This document shows positions 1,915-23,974 of a stretch of 64,000 bases of DNA, one piece after another. Source of the DNA: Diplonema japonicum (Eukaryota; Protista; Euglenozoa: Diplonemea); assembly GCA_964019335.1 (NCBI GenBank), contig OZ025704.1:186001-250000 (forward strand). The letters are read 5' to 3'. The notes beneath the pieces were generated by a model. It searched no databases, had not been told where the DNA came from, and worked only from the letters and a program-made list of their open reading frames with translations. Within the stretch, counting starts at the first letter, position 1, and the number at the start of each line of letters is the position of its first letter. The position numbers and the translations under genes were made by a program.

Positions 1915-3406
1915 TCAGACAACAATTTTACACCTTTTTTTTTTTTTTTTTTTTTTGCTTTCTTTCCCCTGCTAGCAGTCTTCTTTGCCCCCTTCCCTCC
2001 CCTGTTAAAAATGACACGCCAGCAGGGTGCTAAGGGGAAGGGAAAAAAAAAAAAAAAAAAAAAAGAATCATATGCACGTTTTTACCGTGAGAGAAAACTG
2101 GTTATGAAAAAAAAAAAAAAAAAAATGTGGCATAAAGAGAAAAAAAAAAAAATCATGCGATGCTGGTGGTACGTTGCTAACCTTCTCCATCATGATGTGA
2201 ATCTTCTTCTTCTTCTTTTTTTCTTCTCTCTTTTTTTTTTCTCCGATGCACACCGTAAGAATAAAAATCACATCGGGGGGATTTTTTTTTTTATTTATAA
2301 AAGAAAAGAGACGACCTCTTGAATATAAAAGAAATTGTAAAATATATTTTAGGGGCAGCAAGTGTGTTTCACGACACTTTTCCCTAAGCGAGTCAGAGCA
2401 TGGAGAGACAAGGAGAAGGCAAACCTTGGTTAGTTGTCATCAGCTATTGCATTACCAAAATATGTCTCCAAATGTGCTGTTGGACTAAAAACATGTTTTT
2501 TTTTTTTTCTTTTTTTTTTTTTTATTGTGTTTCAGCAAACCATCGTGCGCTTTATTGCTACTTGTGATCACCCCACCCCCCTGAAAGAAAGTACCTGAAA
2601 AAAGAAGAAATAAAAAAAAAAGGTGATTTTAACCACCAAAAACTTAGCTTTTTATATTCTCCCCCCCCCCCCCCTAAACCAAAAAATACTTGCTCAGTTT
2701 CGTTGTAAGAGCAAAAAGAAAGTGGTAGCATGCAGTAATTATCTCCAGGATTTAAACCGTGTGCTCAATCGAATGTTAAAAACCGACTTTTTTTTTTTCC
2801 CCCTCTTTTTTTTTTTGTTTGCGTTTGTTTTTAGTTCTTTGTTACGTCCCCTTCTTCCCCATATTGTTTTGTATTCTCATTTTAAACCCTCTCTTTCTTC
2901 TGGCACCCTTCTTTCTTTTTTTTTTTTTCTTATCCAAAAAAAAAAAAAACCCTCCCCCGGAGCAGGTTTTCATGATTTTTCATTTTTGTAGTTCTTCAAG
3001 AGTTCAAAATGCCCTCACCCGGGCAACGCTCCTTGTGGTTCGTGTTTGGTGACTCTGTGTGTGGGTGTGGCACTAAATAACACTAGTTTTAAACCGCAAT
3101 GCCCTTCCTTCTACCTGCCCTATCCCCCACCTCCCCTCCTCTCTCCTCTCAAGTACCAATAAAGAAAAGCTATTTGTTACCAACAAAATTATGAGGTCCT
3201 TTTATTCCACCCTTCTCGTTCATTTTGAGTCGCATGCTACCGCTCTTCGTGGCCCGCTGATCTGAGTGGTTGTGTATTTGGTTTGATGATTCGGTTGATA
3301 TTTAAGCTTCCCCCCTCCGCCCTTAAAAAAACCGAGCTTCGAAAAAAACCCCGAGACAACGCAACAGGAGAGGGGTAAAAAAAAAAAAAAAAAAAAAAAA
3401 AAGAGC

Positions 3407-5679
3407 ATGGCAGAAACAGAGGAAAAAGTGCCTTTCGAACAGGACACAGCAGCTGGTATGCATTTTTTTTTTTTTTTTTTTTTTTTTCGTTCACACCCCC
3501 TCCAGCCGAAGATGCAACGGACCTCCACAGCTTGCTCCTTCCGGACGGTGCCCTCCCTGTTCATGTGAAGAACTTCTCACTAACTTACGCGAATTTGGTA
3601 TCGAAAAAAAAAAAAAAAAAAAAAAAAAAAGGGGAAAACAACGTACACGGTAACCAAATAACTTTTTTATACCCCAAAAGGGGAGCATCATAAGGTAGGC
3701 ACGCCACCGCGGCGGGCCGTTGCTAACCACTTCGTTCCTATCATAGTGAATTTTTTCCACCGTCGCCTTAAACCCACAACTTTTTTTCCACCGTTCACGG
3801 TAACCTACACCTTTTTTTCCACTTTTTACTGTAACCACCAACAATTTCCCTTATGCAACCACTAACTTTTTTTCCACCGTCCACGGTAACCTCCCACATT
3901 TTATGCCTCATTGGGGTTTGGTACGAAATGTAGCGAGGGGGGCAAAACATGATGTCATAGCAAAAGAAAAGGAAAAAAGACCTTTTAAGAGAAATGGGTG
4001 ACTACCCTGAAGGCTGGGACTACAACCGGGACAGCACTTCGAGGAGTGATTGTGGTTGGTGCAGCAGTTGAGTAATGAGGGTTCTTACAAGTTGCATTTA
4101 ATTTCCCCTTTTCTCTCACTTCGCTTCCTCCTCTTTGCTGGCCTGCCTATCTGTGACTTCGTGACAACAGGGGGCTTGAGGGCGAGGGGTGGAGAAGTAC
4201 ATCAGACGCCAGATACCTCGGCTTTGGCTTTAAATCGTCTTTGGAAATCGCCCTTGCCAACTTCCAGGAGAAATTCTTGGTGTCTTTTTCGAGCCCTGGT
4301 TGTGCCTACACGTTTTTCCAAAGTGCACACACACCTCCACCGTGGACGTTGGAAAAAAAGTTGTGGGTTTCCGTGGACGGTGGAAAAAAAGTTCTTACTT
4401 ACATGGTTTAGTGGAAACAAAAATAGGTTGCCGTGGAGAGTGGAAAAATTTTACAAAAAACCATTTGAGTGGAAAAAAAGTTGTAGGTTACCGTAAACAG
4501 TGGTGGAAATTCTGCTTACAGACTTGAGTGGAAAAAAGTTATTTGGTTACCGTGTACGTTGTTTTTCTCAAAAAAAAAAAAAAAAAAAAAAAAAAACCAC
4601 AGGCTCTCCAAGGCTGGGTCAAACAGCGAAGCCCTGTCTGCGCAGCTTGCAGTGTAGCAGGTGCGTACAACGCTGTACTCGGTCTGTCCAGAGGAATGGA
4701 GGGAGCCCAGAGCCAAGAATCCGTTTTGAATGTACTGAAGGAGCTGGTCGAAGGCCAAATCCGACGGGCGGAGGACAGCCTTCTGAGACAATTGCTGGTC
4801 CCCTCTATCCAACCCGCTCTCGAACTGGTGCAGGAAAGGATCGCCGAGAAGAACAAGACCTTGGGAGGGAAGAAAACTGCAGGTGTCACCCCTAAGGAGT
4901 GCGTCTGCCTTATCAGACGGCGCTGCATAGAAGAGGTGCTGGAGAAGGGCAACGTTGACGTGGATCCCAACAAAATGCCGTCAGATGTGTTCGAGAGTTT
5001 AATCGAAGTGTGGGGCATCACTAAGGAAAAGTGCGAGGTCGAGCCGGAAACACCGGACGACAAGTTCCTGAGCAGCACAGACGATGACGACGAGAGGATG
5101 CTGGCAGGCTCTGACGACGAAGAAGAACTGGAATCTACCGTTGTGATGAAAAAAAAAAACGCGAAAAAAAAGAAAGGCCAAGAAAAGGACCAGGGACAAG
5201 CGGTGTCCTGCGCGCTCAACAAATGGTTCCGAGCGATAATCGCACATGCGAAACTGTGCAGGGACATCGGCCCCTCCACTGCAGGCATAGGCAACTGGGG
5301 CATCTTGCAGTCCACTACAATGCTTGCTGAAAAACACGATGTCTGTATTGGTACCAGGATTCTTTTTGGCCGAGGGTGCACGGCAGCTTTGAAGCTTAGG
5401 TCCAGCGACACTGAGCTCGATGTTTCCCGCCAGTGGGCAGCCGTCCGTGAAGCTTTCGACACCCCACGCACTTCGCTCATCTTCCACCTGACTAATCACT
5501 ACGCCCTTATCTTCGCCATGCGTTCTTATACAAACCCCGAGGGGGTTGTTGTTCGTGAGATCCTCACCGCGCGAAAAGGCCAGCGCCCTTCTGCGTGGAT
5601 CTCGTTCACCGATGTGCGGTCCATCCTCCTCTCGTGGGGAGGATACAAGATCATGCAGGTGGCCGGGTCCGCTGCATGA
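3407..5679 (+). CDS. Papain-fold/C39-like cysteine peptidase homologue, BIVM-like (exons 3407-3455, 3506-3597, 4603-5679)
   Basis: Splice phases restore one frame (MAETEEKVP...YANL|ALQGWVKQRSPVCAACSVAG). Contains Q-x4-C and IFHLTNHYALI motifs similar to BIVM/C39-like proteins. Confidence 0.6.
3631..4569. mobile_element. Non-autonomous Mutator/foldback-like MITE inside an intron
   Basis: TIRs: GGGGAAAACAACGTACACGGTAACCAAATAACTTTTTT (3631-3668) and its near-perfect reverse complement ending at 4569. Subterminal TTTTTTCCAC/GTGGAAAAAA repeats occur in opposite orientation. Flanked by poly-A on both sides. Confidence 0.8.
3671..3750. repeat. ~80-bp dispersed repeat, copy 1, inserted into the left TIR of the MITE
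   Basis: Matches 20199-20279 except for one C indel. Flanked by T6 on both sides and interrupts the TIR relative to the right TIR. Confidence 0.85.
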
Positions 5680-5904
5680 TTTCTAGAAGGGAAGAAAGAA
5701 GAAAAAAAGAAAAAGAAAGAAAAAAAAGGGGGAGAAAAGAATAGTATAAAAGAAAACCCCCCCCCCCCCCCCCTTCCCTCCCATCTTTCCCCTATTGTTA
5801 AATATAGACATTCCCCCCCTCCCTCTTTTTTTTTTTTTCTAGTTTTTTTTTTTCAAGTTTTTTGTTTTGTACAATTTCAAAAAAAAAAAAAGAAATCCAG
5901 ACGA

Positions 5905-7284
5905 ATGGTTGTAAACCAAGAGTATGTTGTGCATGGCACACTGTTTGAACTGCCGGAGAGATATGAGGTGAAGAAAATGGCGGATCACGATGGAGGGCGG
6001 GCGGTGGGGTACGCGACATTCGGTGCGGAGTGCCAGTGCTTCGACAGGGAGCTTGGCTGCAAGGTCATCGCCAAGAAGCTCGAAGGGCCCCACACTTGGA
6101 ACACGGTCCGAGAGTTCCGGCTGCTGTGCAGGCTGTCGCACTACACCCTCGTAAAAATCCTCGACTGCTTCTCAGGGAGCGGCGACACAACCCACGAGCT
6201 CTACTTCGTCACAGCACAACACGACGCCACCCTACAAACCATCATCAGGTCCGAACAGATCCTGACTAAACAACAGATCAAAATCCTATCGTTCCAACTC
6301 CTCGAGGCAGTTCGGTACCTCCACGAAAACAATATAATCGTCACCTCCCTGAACCCATCCAACATATTCTGCACGGTATCATGCGCCCTGTGCATAGGCG
6401 ATTTGGGCAGCGCTGTAATGTTCCGTCCGAACTCCCCTTGCGAGGAAATCCCATCTGCCGACTGCAAGAACCCTGAAGACCTGTACACTAACTGGTACAA
6501 GCCGCCTGAGCTCCTCTTATCCGCACCGGTTATAACCACTGCCTGTGACGTGTGGTCCATTGGGGTCATTCTTGCCGAACTCCTATACCGGCGGCCGTTG
6601 TGGCCTGCAGCCAACTACCTCGACCAGATCAAACGTATCACTGACGCCTTGGGCGTCGACAATGGAGAGGTGAAACCCAGCGAAACCGAACCGGACACCT
6701 GCCACCTTGACTTTCTAGGGAACTCAAAGGACGCGAACACCGTCAAGAAGTACATCGTTTCCTTGGGGCCGAAGCTGAACGTTCCCTTGCGGACGATGCT
6801 TCCGTCAGCAGGTCGGTTTTTCTGTGATTTGCTTGAAAACATGATCCGATTCGGGCCGGCTGGCAGGATGAGCACGGCAGACCTGCTTGACCACCCTTAC
6901 TTCGACACCCTCTCGAGCAGGGAGGTCACCATTTGCAAACGAGCTGACGAGGATCTGGGCACTATTTTCGATCAAAAAACACAAGAACTGACTAGTGTGA
7001 CAGCCTCCTCCCCTGCCGACCTAGCTGGCGTTGCTCAGTACGTCGGGTTTCAACTTCACTCGTTGAACGGCGCCGCCCTCAACGCACCGATGGTCATGGG
7101 CGCCCTGTCCCCACCTGTCTCTTTGCAGACCATCGGAAAAGGGAAGACTTCGGTCACCCTGCTGTTTGGAAAACTGTTGAACTCCCCGTTGAAGGGCGTC
7201 CCATGGGTGACGGAAGGGATGGACAGGGAGGAGCTGGATGAGTGTCTAGTAGAGGATATGCAATACTTACGTAATGCTTTTTAA
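5905..7284 (+). CDS. MAPK-like (CMGC) protein kinase, probable pseudokinase
   Basis: Kinase subdomains present (WYKPPELLL, DVWSIGVILAELL). HRD is replaced (VTSLNPSN), DFG reads DLG, and no TxY is present. Confidence 0.8.
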   Translation: MVVNQEYVVHGTLFELPERYEVKKMADHDGGRAVGYATFGAECQCFDRELGCKVIAKKLEGPHTWNTVREFRLLCRLSHYTLVKILDCFSGSGDTTHELYFVTAQHDATLQTIIRSEQILTKQQIKILSFQLLEAVRYLHENNIIVTSLNPSNIFCTVSCALCIGDLGSAVMFRPNSPCEEIPSADCKNPEDLYTNWYKPPELLLSAPVITTACDVWSIGVILAELLYRRPLWPAANYLDQIKRITDALGVDNGEVKPSETEPDTCHLDFLGNSKDANTVKKYIVSLGPKLNVPLRTMLPSAGRFFCDLLENMIRFGPAGRMSTADLLDHPYFDTLSSREVTICKRADEDLGTIFDQKTQELTSVTASSPADLAGVAQYVGFQLHSLNGAALNAPMVMGALSPPVSLQTIGKGKTSVTLLFGKLLNSPLKGVPWVTEGMDREELDECLVEDMQYLRNAF

Positions 7285-18644: not shown

Positions 18645-18797
18645 TGGTGATTTACAAAAAAAAAAAAAAAAAAAAAATAGATTTTTTTTTGTTCGTTTTT
18701 TTTTTTTTTTTTTTTTTTTTCTCTCTCCCCCAACTATGTAAAAGGTCCGTATTAACATGGCAGCACAGCAACCGAGGCTGACGGGTGGCGCGTGTAT

Positions 18798-18833
<36 letters not shown>

Positions 18834-18878
18834 CCCCCCACACACTCAACCCTAGTGATACGGAAGAAACGTGATGTG

Positions 18879-20108
18879 ATGGACGACGACGACACGGACG
18901 AGAAGATCGAGATCGCTTGGAAGTTCATCGACAATGAGGTGATCGACAAGATGTGTGAAGCGATCGGGAACACAAACCTGGACCCGTTGATCACCGTACT
19001 AGACCTCACGGACAACAAGCTCGGCCCGCAAGGAATGCAACGACTGGCCAATACAATGGAAACCGGCTTCATCTCCGACTGCGTTATAAGGTACAACAAC
19101 ATCGGCAAGGAAGGCGCTGACAGCGTGTCGCTTGTTGTGGAAGGAAGCCAGACACTTACAAACCTCGATTTAAGAGGCAACAAGCTCGACGCGGCGGCTT
19201 TGAAGAAGCTAATGAAAGCTGTCGGAGATTCTGAGAAACTAAAGCTTCTCGGTCTCGGGGGGAATGATTGCGGTGCAGAAGGTGCTGTTTACATCTCCGC
19301 AGCCTTGACACGATCCCCTTCCATCACTAACGTTCAGTTGTGGAAATGCGGGTTCGGTTCAGAGGGAGCGGAACACCTCTCCGCAGTACTCGCACACAAC
19401 AGCAGCATATTAACAATCGATTTGTGGAACAACCGCTTCGGTCCCGAGGGAACAGGGTACTTAAGCAAAGGCTTGGCGCACAACAACACGTTGAAACGGC
19501 TTTCGTTAGGTGATAACCGGATTACTGACGCTGGGCTCCCCGATCTCTGCAGGGCCTTGAAGGGCAGCAGGACCCTCATGGACGTGGATTTAAGAAGTAA
19601 CGGATTTACACCCGAAGGCATTATAATGCTGGCAAAGGCTTTGAAAGATCACACCAGTATACAGTCGATCCATTTATGCAGCAACACAATCGGGGCGGAC
19701 GGGGCAGAAGCGATCGCAGATTCATGGAAAAAGAACTCGGCTCTTGTTGACATCGATTTGTGGAACACAAAGCTCGGGTCGAATGGCGCGAAACATATTG
19801 CGAATCTTTTATCCCACAACAGCCATCTTATGAGCCTTTCTCTTGCAGGGAATAACATAGATACATCGGCCGCTTCTGAACTGGCGGCTGCCATTCCCAC
19901 TGCAACGTCGTTTGAGTTCATCGATCTCGTGAATAATGAAATAAATATTGAAGGTGCGGAGGCGCTGCTCTCTGCTGTCGAGAAGAACCCTTCTGTGACA
20001 AGCCTGTCTCTGCATGGTAATAATATTAGCAGGGTGATGCAGAAAAAGATCAATTCAACCTTGCATGAACGGAGGGTGCAGGCAGGGATCGATCGAGAAG
20101 GGAAATAG
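18879..20108 (+). CDS. Ribonuclease-inhibitor-type leucine-rich repeat protein
   Basis: About 13 repeats of 28 aa with the pattern LxxLxLxxNxIGxxGAxxL. Confidence 0.9.
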   Translation: MDDDDTDEKIEIAWKFIDNEVIDKMCEAIGNTNLDPLITVLDLTDNKLGPQGMQRLANTMETGFISDCVIRYNNIGKEGADSVSLVVEGSQTLTNLDLRGNKLDAAALKKLMKAVGDSEKLKLLGLGGNDCGAEGAVYISAALTRSPSITNVQLWKCGFGSEGAEHLSAVLAHNSSILTIDLWNNRFGPEGTGYLSKGLAHNNTLKRLSLGDNRITDAGLPDLCRALKGSRTLMDVDLRSNGFTPEGIIMLAKALKDHTSIQSIHLCSNTIGADGAEAIADSWKKNSALVDIDLWNTKLGSNGAKHIANLLSHNSHLMSLSLAGNNIDTSAASELAAAIPTATSFEFIDLVNNEINIEGAEALLSAVEKNPSVTSLSLHGNNISRVMQKKINSTLHERRVQAGIDREGK

Positions 20109-20153: not shown

Positions 20154-20188
<35 letters not shown>

Positions 20189-20191
<3 letters not shown>

Positions 20192-20279
20192 GGGAACGAC
20201 CCCAAAAGGGGAGCATCATAAGGTAGGCACGCCACCCGCGGCGGGCCGTTGCTAACCACTTCGTTCCTATCATAGTGAA
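20189..20279. repeat. ~90-bp dispersed structured repeat, copy 2
   Basis: Matches 3671-3750. GGAACGA (20193-20199) is complementary to TCGTTCC (20261-20267). Embedded in poly-T. Confidence 0.85.
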
Positions 20280-20569
20280 TTTTTTTTTTTTCCCCCATCC
20301 CTTGCCTCCCCCCTCCACCCTTTAAGATGTGAATATTCTATATTGTTTCATTATCTTTTCTTCTTCGATTTCTTTTTTACGCTGTGCCCAGTGCGAGACG
20401 CCATGAAATAAGACAAACAATCAGACCGGCTGTCTCAAAAGAATTGATCTACGGCAGGTCGTTTTTGCTGGAATGGCTCTTCTCCTCGAGCCAAACCGCC
20501 CCCTATCAGAACGGTGAGCACTCACCGCACACCGAAATTTATCAATTCCTTTTTGCCCAGAGGAATAAT

Positions 20570-23032
20570 ATGACGATAACTGTATTTCACAATCACATCA
20601 CAGACCTGTTCGAGAAGCATTTGTTTGCTCTTGCCGAGACCGAAATAAAACCATTCTGATTTGTCTTTCCCGTTCGCCCCCCTTTTTTTCTTGGGCCTTC
20701 GTCTGTCCCTTGGGTTTTGTTTCATGATGACAAACCTATTTCACAATCACATCACAGACCTGTTCGAGAAGCATTGTTCATGCCGAGAACCGAATTCAAA
20801 TATATCTGATTTTTTTTTTGTTCTTCTCTGTGCTCTGAGGGCATCTGTTAGGTTTTTTCATGATGACAACAACATTTCACAATCACATCACAGACCTGTT
20901 CGAGAAGCATTTGTTTATGCCGAGAACCGAATTAAAATTTATCTGATCCTTTTTTTCTGTGTGCAGGATGGCCTTAGATGGGTGCCTCCTGAGAATCCCT
21001 TTCTTTGATCAGTTTTCGTGATGACAACAACATTTCACAATCACATCACAGACCTGTTCGAGAAGCATTTGCTCATGCCGAGAACCGAATTCAAATTTAT
21101 CTGATTTCTTTTCTTTCTCTCTCTGTGCTCTGAGGGCATTTGTTAGGCTTTTTCATGATGACAACAACATTTCACAATCACATCACAGACCTGTTCGAGA
21201 AGCATTTGTTTATGCCGAGAACCGAATTAAAACATTTTCTGACCCATCTGCACAATCTTTCTGTAGTCTCTGGTTTTTTATTTTTATTTTTTTTCTTTGC
21301 GGGAGTAAATGATGACAACAACATTTCACATCACATCACAGACCTGTTCGAGAAGCATTTGCTCATGCCGAGAACCGAATTAAAATTTATCTGATTTTTT
21401 TTTTCTTCGGGGTCGAAGGCCTTAGAAGGGAGTCCCACCGCTCTGAGGGCATCCGTTAGGCTTTCATGATGACAACAATATTTCACAATCACATCACAGA
21501 CCTGTTCGAGAAGCATTTGTTTATGCCGAGAACCGAATTAAAATTTATCTGACCCATTTCTCTTTTTCCTTTTTAGGCAGGAAGGGTGCCTCTCGAGAAT
21601 GCACTTCGTGATGACAACCATATTTTCACAATCACATCACAGACCTGTTCGAGAAGCATTAATTTGCTATTGCCGAGAACCGAATTAAAACCTTTCTGAC
21701 CCATCATCTGTATATGGCTTCTGTGATGTCTCTTTTGTTTTGCAGTGATAAATGATGACAACAACATTTCACAATCACATCACAGACCTGTTCGAGAAGC
21801 ATTTGTTTATGCCGAGAACCGAATTAAAATTTATCTGATTTTTTCTTCTTTTTCTTCTCTCGGAAATGGGGAGGGGCCAAGTTGTACAATTTCTGTAATG
21901 ATGACAACAACATTTCACATCACATCACAGACCTGTTCGAGAAGCATTAATTTGCTATTGCCGAGAACCGAATTAAAATTTCTCTGATAAATGCTTGTGC
22001 CCTAAGTCTTTTTTTTTTTTTTTTTTTTTTCGTGATGACAACAACATTTCACAATCACATCACAGACCTGTTCGAGAAGCATTTTGTTTATGCCGAGAAC
22101 CGAATTAAAACACCTCTGATCCTCACATGCTGCCTTTTGCATCTTGTTGCAAGCTATTTTTCGTGATGACAATCCTTCATTCACATCACATCACAGACCT
22201 GTTCGAGAAGCATCTATTTACTCTTGCCGAGAACCGAATTAAAATCTTTCTGACCACATTTTTTGTTAAATGCTCACTGCCCAAAGTCCTTATGATGACA
22301 ACAATATTTCACAATCACATCACAGACCTGTTCGAGAAGCATTAATTTGCTATTGCCGAGAACCGAATTAAAACATCTCTGATCACCCCCCTTTTTTTTG
22401 TTAAACGCCCGTGCCCCCCCTCCCTATATTGCGCATGACCCCCCAACCCGGAGGGGGGGGGGGGGTCGATATATGCGGTACCCCCCCCCCCCCCCCTCTC
22501 ACCCAAGTTCCTCTTTTTTTTGTGATGACAACAATATTTCACAATCACATCACAGACCTGTTCGAGAAGCATTAATTTGTTATTGCCGAGAACCGAATTA
22601 AAATTTCTCTGATCCCCCCCCCCCCCCTCCCCCCTTTTTTTGTTAAATGTTTGTGCCCCAGGTCTTTTTTTTTCCGTGATGACAACAATATTTCACAATC
22701 ACATCACAGACCTGTTCGAGAAGCATTTGCTCATGCCGAGAACCGAATTAAAACACCTCTGATCTTCACATGTTGCCTTTTGCATCTTTTTGTAAACAGT
22801 TTTCGTGATGACAATCCTTCATTCACAATCACATCACAGACCTGTTCGAGAAGCATCTATTTGCTCTTGCCGAGAACCGAATTAAAATCTTTCTGACCAC
22901 CCCATTTTCTTTATTAAATGCCCACTGCCCAAAGTCCTTTCATGATGACAACACTATTTCACAATCACATCACAGACCTGTTCGAGAAGCATTAATTTGC
23001 TATTGCCGAGAACCGAATTAAAACATCTCTGA
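20570..23032 (+). ncRNA. Tandem array of 17 box C/D snoRNA copies, U25/snR56-like guide against SSU rRNA
   Basis: Units of 86-92 nt start at 20570, 20724, 20860, 21018, 21155, 21309, 21466, 21608, 21752, 21898, 22032, 22163, 22292, 22522, 22676, 22805 and 22942. Each has RTGATGA (ATGACGA in copy 1), invariant CATCACAGACCTGTT, a C'-like WTGCCGA and a terminal CTGA. Confidence 0.88.
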
Positions 23033-23072: not shown

Positions 23073-23129
23073 GTGATGACAATCCTTGTCGTCGTGTGTA
23101 GCCCGTAAGGGACGTTTAGAATTTCCTGA
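23073..23129 (+). ncRNA. Divergent or chimeric 18th C/D unit
   Basis: Starts GTGATGACAATCCTT like copies 12 and 16, has a different interior, and ends in CTGA. Confidence 0.35.
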
Positions 23130-23296
23130 TTTTCACTTACTCCTCCAATTTTAGCTTTTTTTTAATACAATATTTTCCTAAGAACCATTAAAAAAAATAA
23201 TAAAAATAATAAATAAATAAATAAGAAAATAGAATTCACAAGATGCACAGGTTAAGAACCACATTTACTTTAAAAAAACACCTACAAAGAACCATC

Positions 23297-23974
23297 ATGG
23301 AGCTCAACGCCGACCTTGGTAAGTCAGTGGCGATCGACAGTGCAAAAATAGACTGGACCACGAGCCAAATGAAGGGGGTGATGAGGCGAATGCTTGAAAG
23401 GAAGGGTGATGAGGTGGCCATATGCGCTACAATTGTGAAGTACGACCCCGAAAGCTACTACGACGAGCACGGGCACGAAGAAGGGGAGGAGTTCGTGGTC
23501 CTCGAGGGAGTCTTCTCGGACAATTACGGTGACTTCCCTGCAGGCACTTATGTGAGGAACCCACCGGGATCCAAGCACAAGCCGTTCACAAAAGGCGGGT
23601 GTGCTATCTTTGTCCGTCTGCGACAGTTTCTTCCTGAAGACCAGCAGTACGTCCGGACAAACATTTTCGAGCAACCGGAATCCGCTTGGAAAACAGACGG
23701 TGCCACCAAGGTTTCCACCCTGCCCCTCCACACCTACGCCACTGAAACCTTCTCTGTTCTGAAGATCCCACCGCAGACATCGGTTCCTTCGCGTGTCACA
23801 ACACGAATTGAGGAGTCCTTTATTCTCAAGGGATCTATCATGGAGGGTGGTGAGGTGCACCCTGTTCACTCTTGGATCCGAAAGGCCGTCGGTTCCCCAT
23901 GCACGTGGAAGAGCGGAGACGAAGAATGCTACATTTTGCACAGGGTGGGGAGGTCTAAGCATCCCGAGTTGTGA
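23297..23974 (+). CDS. ChrR-like cupin (bicupin) domain protein, bacterial type
   Basis: MELNAD...HGHEEGEEFVVLEGVFSD..GDFPAGTYVRNPPGSKHKP..GCAIFVRLRQF closely follows the bacterial ChrR-cupin pattern. No introns. Confidence 0.85.
   Translation: MELNADLGKSVAIDSAKIDWTTSQMKGVMRRMLERKGDEVAICATIVKYDPESYYDEHGHEEGEEFVVLEGVFSDNYGDFPAGTYVRNPPGSKHKPFTKGGCAIFVRLRQFLPEDQQYVRTNIFEQPESAWKTDGATKVSTLPLHTYATETFSVLKIPPQTSVPSRVTTRIEESFILKGSIMEGGEVHPVHSWIRKAVGSPCTWKSGDEECYILHRVGRSKHPEL

Follow-up and report, generated by a model that had tools for sequence, protein, structure and literature searches.

A seventeen-copy tandem array of predicted snR56/U25-type box C/D snoRNA genes in the diplonemid Diplonema japonicum

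Introduction

What is an array with the outward look of a CRISPR (clustered regularly interspaced short palindromic repeats) locus doing among the protein-coding genes of a eukaryote? The locus that raises this question occupies positions 20570-23032, on the + strand, of a 64,000-nt stretch of the Diplonema japonicum genome (assembly GCA_964019335.1, contig OZ025704.1, positions 186,001 to 250,000), hereafter the window, in whose numbering coordinates are given unless another sequence is named. Our analysis indicates that its repeated units are probably genes for small nucleolar RNAs (snoRNAs) of the box C/D class, the predicted counterpart of yeast snR56, human U25/SNORD25, Arabidopsis snoR19 and Trypanosoma brucei TB9Cs2C4, a functional-counterpart assignment based on the guide, its position and its target, and that the array is very probably functional. 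This agrees with an initial annotation of the locus, which had proposed a box C/D guide RNA of the snR56/U25 type: snR56 is the best-matching Rfam family, and the guide targets helix 34 of the small-subunit (SSU) ribosomal RNA (rRNA).

The resemblance to CRISPR arrays, which lies in the regular repeats and the unique spacers of similar size, is one of appearance only. CRISPR arrays combine identical repeats of ~25-50 nt with a fixed spacer length, cas genes and a prokaryotic host, and the array described here differs in all of these respects. Its repeats measure 86-92 nt and contain both C/D boxes and an element antisense to rRNA, its spacers range from 38 to 139 nt, and its neighbours are eukaryotic leucine-rich repeat (LRR), Sec6 and cupin genes, with no cas genes nearby and with mRNAs trans-spliced to a spliced leader (SL). 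A CRISPR interpretation was accordingly rejected.

Results

Architecture of the array and its units

The array was delimited by inspection of the sequence, by Tandem Repeats Finder and by a parse anchored on the invariant 15-mer CATCACAGACCTGTT (17 matches on the + strand and 0 on the - strand) together with the nearest C/D boxes. It consists of 17 co-oriented, head-to-tail units of 86-92 nt, the first at 20570-20659 and the last at 22942-23032, separated by spacers of 38-71 nt with the single exception of one of 139 nt. Pyrimidines account for 70% of the spacers and 50% of the units on the + strand, and the unit number, unit lengths and pyrimidine-rich spacers previously described for the locus were thus reproduced. 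Box D (CTGA) closes every unit and WTGCCGAG is present in all 17, while box C in its RTGATGA form opens 16 of them, the first unit having ATGACGA instead. The boundaries at boxes C and D, the WTGCCGA motif and the invariant 15-mer of the initial annotation therefore hold throughout, a degenerate box C being confined to unit 1. Within the 62.5-Mb assembly the 15-mer occurs 17 times, in each case inside the array, and its reversed control does not occur at all.

Units 2-17 (20724-23032, + strand) form a series of sixteen intact predicted box C/D snoRNA genes. Each begins with RTGATGA, continues for 34-36 nt that end in the guide CATCACAGACCTGTT, and then passes through CGAGA (D'), a variable hairpin loop, WTGCCGAGA (C'), ACCGAATTMAAA and 4-6 variable nucleotides to CTGA. 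The first of the 17 D' guides, located by the 15-mer search, lies at 20596-20610 on the + strand; the others start, on the same strand, at 20750, 20886, 21044, 21181, 21334, 21492, 21635 and 21778 (copies 2-9) and at 21923, 22058, 22189, 22318, 22548, 22702, 22832 and 22968 (copies 10-17). The loop between D' and C', which occurs as four isoforms (TTTGTTTA; TTTGCTCA; TTAATTTGCTAT; TCTATTTGCTCT), is closed by a short GCA(U)/(A)UGC stem, and no conserved terminal stem outside the boxes was found in the flanks of the units.

The units give sub-threshold matches to the snR56 family of box C/D snoRNAs

At gathering thresholds, Rfam returned no match in the window. At permissive thresholds snR56 (RF01188, clan CL00049) is the best family, and every one of the 17 units aligns to its whole length (model positions 1-84), with scores of 22.9-40.1 bits (28.5-40.1 bits for units 2-17) and a best E-value of 0.0023. 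The Rfam comparison suggested in the initial annotation is therefore borne out for the choice of family in every unit, and falls short in score, the gathering cut-off of RF01188 being 54 bits. Box C, the antisense core ACACAGACCUGU, D', C' and box D all find their places in the model, and in this order. When the whole genome was searched with the same model, 16 array units headed the 27 listed matches, the other 11 being weaker, with E-values of 0.3 or worse.

The guide pairs with helix 34 in the 18S rRNA of the same organism

The ribosomal DNA (rDNA) repeat of the organism, on contig C119 (L012), is only 6,825 bp long, with the SSU at 191-2260 (2,070 nt), the large-subunit (LSU) region at 2750-6229 (3,480 nt) and an intergenic spacer of ~790 bp; partial SSU fragments are scattered over at least 6 other contigs. 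At SSU positions 1683-1697 (L012 1873-1887) the sequence reads AGCAGGUCUGUGAUG, and the universal AACAGGUCUGUGAUG is absent. The guide/18S duplex comprises 15 contiguous base pairs, including one G.U, and ends directly at D'. Its predicted free energy is -25.3 kcal/mol, compared with -16.4 +/- 2.1 kcal/mol for shuffled guides over the whole rDNA unit, or ~4 standard deviations better. The single wobble arises because the rRNA has AGCAGG; no AACAGG form was found among the rDNA copies and fragments of the assembly (0 reverse-strand matches of the 15-mer). The claim that the 15-mer is complementary to a conserved SSU motif thus needs one amendment, in that the SSU carries AGCAGG and not AACAGG, and survives in that pairing is kept by the G.U wobble. 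Since a T opposite the rRNA G is retained in 17 of 17 copies, the guide has not been adjusted to the change in the rRNA.

The paired segment forms the 3' strand of helix 34, part of the decoding centre, and the D'-side guide is directed to the conserved G of AACAGGUCUG in this helix of 18S rRNA. Helix 34 of the decoding centre is the location of a methylated site (PMC2794176) whose 2'-O-methylguanosine (Gm) is widely shared: the homologous residues are Gm1428 in yeast, guided by snR56, Gm1490 in human, guided by U25, Gm1431 in Arabidopsis, guided by AtsnoR19, and Gm1506 in Dictyostelium, guided by CD1 (PMC2794176, PMC8817022, PMC3542256, PMC4344503). In T. brucei it is Gm1895, guided by TB9Cs2C4, which is listed as the snR56/U25 equivalent (PMC3542256, Table 4).

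Which guanosine the Diplonema guide would select depends on how the D' box is read. In the register of the Rfam alignment, the C of CGAG stands over the C of the CUGA of the model and the guide is aligned to ACACAGACCUGU; counting five nucleotides upstream of D', this register predicts that a C paired with the first G of CAGG would direct methylation to G1687, the homologue of the yeast site. A second register, which draws on textbook kink-turn (K-turn) geometry as well as on inspection of the sequence, takes D' as UCGA and C' as CGAGA, an arrangement that restores canonical GA dinucleotides to the two boxes and in which G.A, A.G, C-G and U-A pairs are possible, and would select G1688 instead. 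We therefore concur with the earlier statement that the non-canonical D' box leaves the exact methylated base open, and narrow the choice to G1687 or G1688.

A search for further guides gave no additional targets. Pairing of the 5' extension CAACAACATTTCACAATCA, of the D'-C' region and of the invariant GAGAACCGAATTAAAA with the pre-rRNA remained at the level of shuffled sequences. Across the 17 units, 10 variants occur of the 18 nt that precede box D, and the best rRNA duplexes beginning next to box D comprise 9-10 bp with 1-4 G.U pairs, values equalled by 40% of shuffled guides. As no target on the D side is better than shuffles, the units would be single-guide snoRNAs, like snR56 and U25. 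A better-matched guide gene elsewhere was sought with the 12-mer CACAGACCTGCT, which has 19 sites in the genome: five are the rDNA copies of C119, one (C80:201757) falls within an SSU fragment, and none of the thirteen others, all inspected, has C/D boxes. The array is the organism's only source of a guide for the helix-34 Gm.

At an intergenic site on another contig (G000:C69:152562-152573, minus strand; L028 ~2064-2081), an 18-nt stretch (GAGCATCACAGACCTGCT) is perfectly antisense to this 18S target, and CAGA comes next. The site was considered as a second guide gene and rejected, having no recognisable box C or box D, and is probably a tiny captured piece of rDNA or a chance match.

A gene for fibrillarin is present in the genome (G000:C100:40444-41239). 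It is recovered as three consecutive Pfam pieces with one in-frame TGA in the middle piece, which suggests short introns or a frame change.

Boxes and guide are fixed while the remainder of the array diverges

Mean identity is 88% among units and 32% among spacers, the latter value being approximately that of a global alignment of unrelated sequence. Across units 2-17, 26 of 93 alignment columns are variable, and none of the 38 columns that make up box C, the guide, D', C' and box D is truly changed; two columns that were flagged reflect a gap artefact in unit 5, which likewise ends in CTGA. Were the 26 variable columns placed at random, they would avoid the 38 box and guide columns with a probability of ~5e-8. 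What varies instead is the sequence of the spacers, of the D'-C' loop and of the 5 nt that precede box D, precisely the distribution that had been claimed for the array, and the degenerate versions of D' and C' are themselves invariant across units 2-17.

The history of the array can be read from its spacers. Spacers 2 and 4, and likewise 11 and 15, are 84% alike, 12 and 16 are 73% alike, and units 11-12-13 and 15-16-17 have a common order of loop isoforms, which points to recent duplication of two- and three-unit blocks on an old array. Higher-order structure is also indicated by Tandem Repeats Finder, whose periods of 136, 295 and 448 over the array correspond to one, two and three units. 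The array has thus grown by duplication of blocks of one to three units.

Such a history invites the question of whether most copies are dead, in which case the array would be a satellite made up of snoRNA pseudogenes that gene conversion keeps alike, and one or a few members would be working genes. Decay is indeed visible in unit 1 and in an eighteenth unit described below, and the appearance of selection could come from gene conversion acting within the homologous units alone. This account, which has to accommodate all box and guide positions intact in sixteen copies next to 26 other columns that vary, seems to us very unlikely; four loop isoforms and seven variants near box D persist, and whole-genome searches with the 15-mer and with snR56 found no other locus able to supply the guide. 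The persistence of the four loop isoforms together with several 3' variants argues that the copies have not simply been homogenised. Under the preferred interpretation of the units as functional snoRNA genes, gene conversion confined to homologous units could still contribute to the pattern of constraint.

At the 5' edge, unit 1 (20570-20659, + strand) combines the box C ATGACGA with a C' that lacks one A (GAG-ACCG) and a change of AATT to AAAT, has the lowest snR56 score of the series (22.9 bits), and is probably a decayed edge copy. Beyond the 3' edge, comparison with units 12 and 16 revealed an eighteenth box C/D-like unit of 57 nt (23073-23129, + strand), which agrees with these two in its first 15 nt, in the spacer ahead of it and in the GAATT...CTGA tail; its middle has been replaced, its core is unique in the genome, and it is probably a rearranged dead end copy. 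The possibility that it is a long antisense to the rRNA segment adjoining the target was discarded, the local alignment score being 19 compared with a shuffle mean of 20.3.

The exceptional spacer between units 13 and 14 contains a 90-bp insert (22415-22504, - strand) that copies part of the rDNA intergenic spacer, antisense relative to the array. It is 91% identical to L012 6384-6465, derives from the rDNA intergenic spacer ~155-235 nt past the LSU 3' end, holds a G13/C15 hairpin and has further copies on C86, C37 (adjoining an SSU fragment) and C28. This insert explains both the length of the 139-nt spacer and the very high read depth found there.

Sequencing reads support the array and its copy number

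Contigs from four public runs of three studies were placed on the region, with the reservation that the assembly itself may have been built from the best among them. In at least one run, contigs with 0 differences cover ten junctions, those after units 1, 3, 4, 5, 6, 8, 9, 11, 12 and 17, and in the DNA-like run X1 the depth of the junction pieces is 338-905, compared with 578-620 for the flanking genes. The array, which the initial annotation had made depend on raw reads, is thus supported by contigs from these runs. An assembly artefact, in which the repeat was over-expanded or collapsed, could be argued from the fact that the 2.5-kb array is not spanned by the short contigs, none of which covers it in full, and from the possible use of the best DNA runs in the assembly itself. 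Nearly all spacers are unique, which makes a collapsed or inflated array unlikely, and, with ten distinct junctions recovered free of differences across these runs and X1 depths close to those of the flanking genes, we regard an artefactual copy number as scarcely credible.

Just upstream of the array, window positions ~20198-20510 form a very high-depth repeat, with up to ~1.2 million summed word depth compared with ~600 for single-copy DNA in X1, and a diverged variant of 20384-20476 reaches ~40-50x the baseline depth in runs X3 and X6. Comparison with the rDNA unit gave no rDNA derivation for this repeat, and a T34 run lies at 20155-20188.

The array lies in a same-strand gene cluster next to a trans-splice acceptor

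All large open reading frames between 4.5 and 63 kb of the window lie on the + strand. The upstream neighbour of the array is an LRR protein gene (18792-20108, + strand; Pfam LRR_6, E = 8e-31), and the downstream neighbour encodes a ChrR cupin-like protein (23243-23974, + strand; Pfam Cupin_7, E = 5e-32). The AG spliced-leader acceptor of the latter gene lies at 23249-23250 (+ strand), where a run X5 contig of the cupin mRNA, starting at 23250, is preceded by CTACAGTTTCTGTACTTTATT, the 3' end of the SL group 'Euglenozoa 14' (AACCAACGATTTAAAAGCTACAGTTTCTGTACTTTATTG), which we take to be the Diplonema spliced leader. This SL group is listed in PMC3795323. On its 3' side, the intergenic stretch around the array ends at this acceptor; the array is therefore placed on the transcribed strand between the 3' end of the upstream gene and the downstream trans-splice acceptor. 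The acceptor also lies downstream of the first ATG of the cupin reading frame, and the start codon is probably the ATG at 23297 (MELNADLGK...).

Contigs of run X5 extend across unit-spacer-unit pieces at a depth of ~5, compared with 61 and 551 for the flanking mRNAs, and such spacer-spanning contigs fit a short-lived precursor or, equally, DNA carry-over. Splicing within the array was considered and rejected: the candidate contig joints have sides of 19-28 nt in homopolymer or high-copy sequence, occur also in DNA-like runs, and include none with GT..AG ends, and were therefore read as repeat artefacts.

Arrays of a single guide recur elsewhere in the genome

That one guide is amplified 17-fold had been taken as a sign of a high-dosage role, such as pre-rRNA folding or processing, or tunable methylation. 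This part of the initial annotation is not upheld. A genome search for RPS3 led to six tandem copies of a different box C/D unit, immediately upstream of an RPS3 gene (L035 2150-3249, on G000:C99, minus strand; unit AATGATGACACCAAAACACACACAAATCACTCC...CACCACCATCTGA), with diverged spacers and an internal G/C-rich hairpin that alternates between two forms. Euglenozoa typically have their snoRNA genes in multiple copies: in Euglena they are described as multi-copy and linked (PMC2784804, citing Russell et al. 2006), and assemblies of Trypanosoma cruzi contain 1,418-1,662 snoRNA gene copies in tandem arrays (PMC12618653). Taken with the array beside RPS3, these cases indicate that a homogeneous array is the local norm. 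Seventeen copies exceed the six of the RPS3-side array and stand at the high end of the arrays examined; copy-number comparators sought by the pattern GACGGGCGGTGTG and with Rfam U14 were uninformative.

The same evidence bears on the proposal that the amplified RNA is mainly non-methylating, abundant as a chaperone that would keep the 3' strand of helix 34 open or in place while 18S folds or is processed, its degenerate D'/C' pair having lost methylation. Its attractions are the non-canonical D' and C', the excess of 17 copies over the six-copy single-guide array of the same genome, and conserved segments outside the guide that have no rRNA match. Copy number alone is not diagnostic in a genome with multi-copy snoRNA arrays, and no extra complementarity to pre-rRNA exceeds that of shuffled sequences. 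The UCGA/CGAGA pair, as far as it can be judged by eye, would still offer tandem G.A and two Watson-Crick pairs, and a conserved Gm is found at the site in yeast, human, plant, amoeba and trypanosome (PMC8817022, PMC3542256). We consider a chaperone of this kind highly improbable. Taken more broadly, the suggestion that UCGA with CGAGA shifts the ruler by one nucleotide to G1688, away from the universally conserved G next to it, or else that the 17-copy RNA is a non-methylating helix-34 assembly chaperone whose role the exceptional copy number serves, is unlikely; if either were true, diplonemids would have put a universally conserved guide to a new use.

Discussion

Here we have examined an array whose units are best read as genes for a box C/D guide RNA of the snR56/U25 type, a conclusion that has to be set against several observations. 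Every Rfam score of the array lies below the gathering cut-off, so that by the cut-off rule no unit is a scored member of RF01188, and the distance from box C to D' is, at 34-36 nt, ~12 nt longer than in snR56. Both D' (CGAG/UCGA) and C' (UGCCGA/CGAGA) are non-canonical, K-loop formation and the target nucleotide being predicted, and rRNA pairing offers no explanation for two invariant stretches, TTCACAATCA and ACCGAATT. Relatives for comparison were not found in a metagenome scan with TGATGA-N(15-40)-CACAGACCTGNTCGAGA, whose 6 matches were all due to chance; considered as relatives, these proved to be unrelated, coding-looking DNA devoid of C/D architecture. The low coverage of spacers in the RNA run could equally represent DNA carry-over, and the mature ~90-nt RNA, its ends, its protein binding and the methyl group are predictions from sequence.

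Comparison with known systems places the array among the guides of helix 34. It has in common with snR56, U25 and AtsnoR19 the antisense core CACAGACCUGU just 5' of D', the helix-34 target, the use of the D'-side guide with no working D guide, and a similar overall size. It departs from snR56 in the ~12 extra nucleotides between box C and the guide and in the one G.U wobble, and from its snR56-type relatives in having D' CGAG/UCGA and C' UGCCGAG where these have CUGA and UGAUGA. The units also lack a conserved terminal stem, in which they may be likened to the snoRNAs of Euglena, reportedly compact and without such a stem. By its name, the trypanosome counterpart TB9Cs2C4 would be one of several snoRNAs in a chromosome 9 cluster, whereas a single gene is repeated in the array. 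PMC3542256 (Table 4) lists TB9Cs2C4 (SSU Gm1895), from another euglenozoan, as equivalent to snR56/U25.

The organisation of the array differs from that of the yeast and human genes and finds closer parallels in Euglenozoa. The yeast snR56 gene is listed as monocistronic and human U25 as intronic (PMC2656528, Table 4), in contrast to the 17-copy tandem seen here. Trypanosomatid snoRNA genes form clusters that RNA polymerase II (Pol II) transcribes as polycistrons and whose products are processed from precursors (PMC6562600), an arrangement that the same-strand intergenic position of the array fits. In Euglena gracilis, snoRNA genes occur in polycistronic clusters and, as in the array, are linked, multi-copy and present as isoforms (Russell et al. 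2006 and Moore & Russell 2012, cited in PMC2784804 and PMC7671301). A more distant parallel is offered by SNORD115 and SNORD116, which likewise form long head-to-tail series of a single box C/D species shaped by block duplication and conversion (PMC12429941, PMC8789076); these are intron-hosted, imprinted orphans without rRNA targets, whereas the array is intergenic and carries a canonical rRNA guide.

Drawing on these parallels, the array may be transcribed within a long Pol II precursor, as in trypanosomatids. The core proteins Snu13, Nop56, Nop58 and fibrillarin would then bind the C/D kink-turn, after which nucleases would free each unit. The D' guide would place fibrillarin on G1687 of 18S rRNA, in the register homologous to yeast Gm1428, or on G1688 if D' is read as UCGA, and, in such a single-guide snoRNA, the stretch upstream of box D would be without a target. 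What is observed at the locus is the same-strand gene cluster and the SL acceptor at 23249-23250; the precursor signal consists of the low-depth X5 contigs, for which DNA carry-over is also a possible source. The copy number, in turn, would represent a lineage habit of multi-copy snoRNA arrays and not a special role for this guide.

The organisation of the array most likely follows the multi-copy, polycistronic manner of Euglenozoa, and its layout is ordinary for this genome because single-guide tandem arrays recur in it, as the six-copy example beside RPS3 illustrates. Its peculiarities are the degenerate and fixed D' and C' boxes, the long 5' extension and the uncorrected G.U. For annotation, the locus carries the warning that CRISPR-looking arrays in such genomes are snoRNA genes, and it provides a clean example of a single-guide array that grows by block duplication as its boxes and guide remain fixed. 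No account of diplonemid snoRNAs was found in the literature searched. The finding opens no new mechanism; the biochemical point that it raises is how a CGAG/UCGA D' box measures its target nucleotide. In adding a guide of the snR56/U25 type to diplonemid-like euglenozoans, the array supports the view that the helix-34 Gm is ancient.

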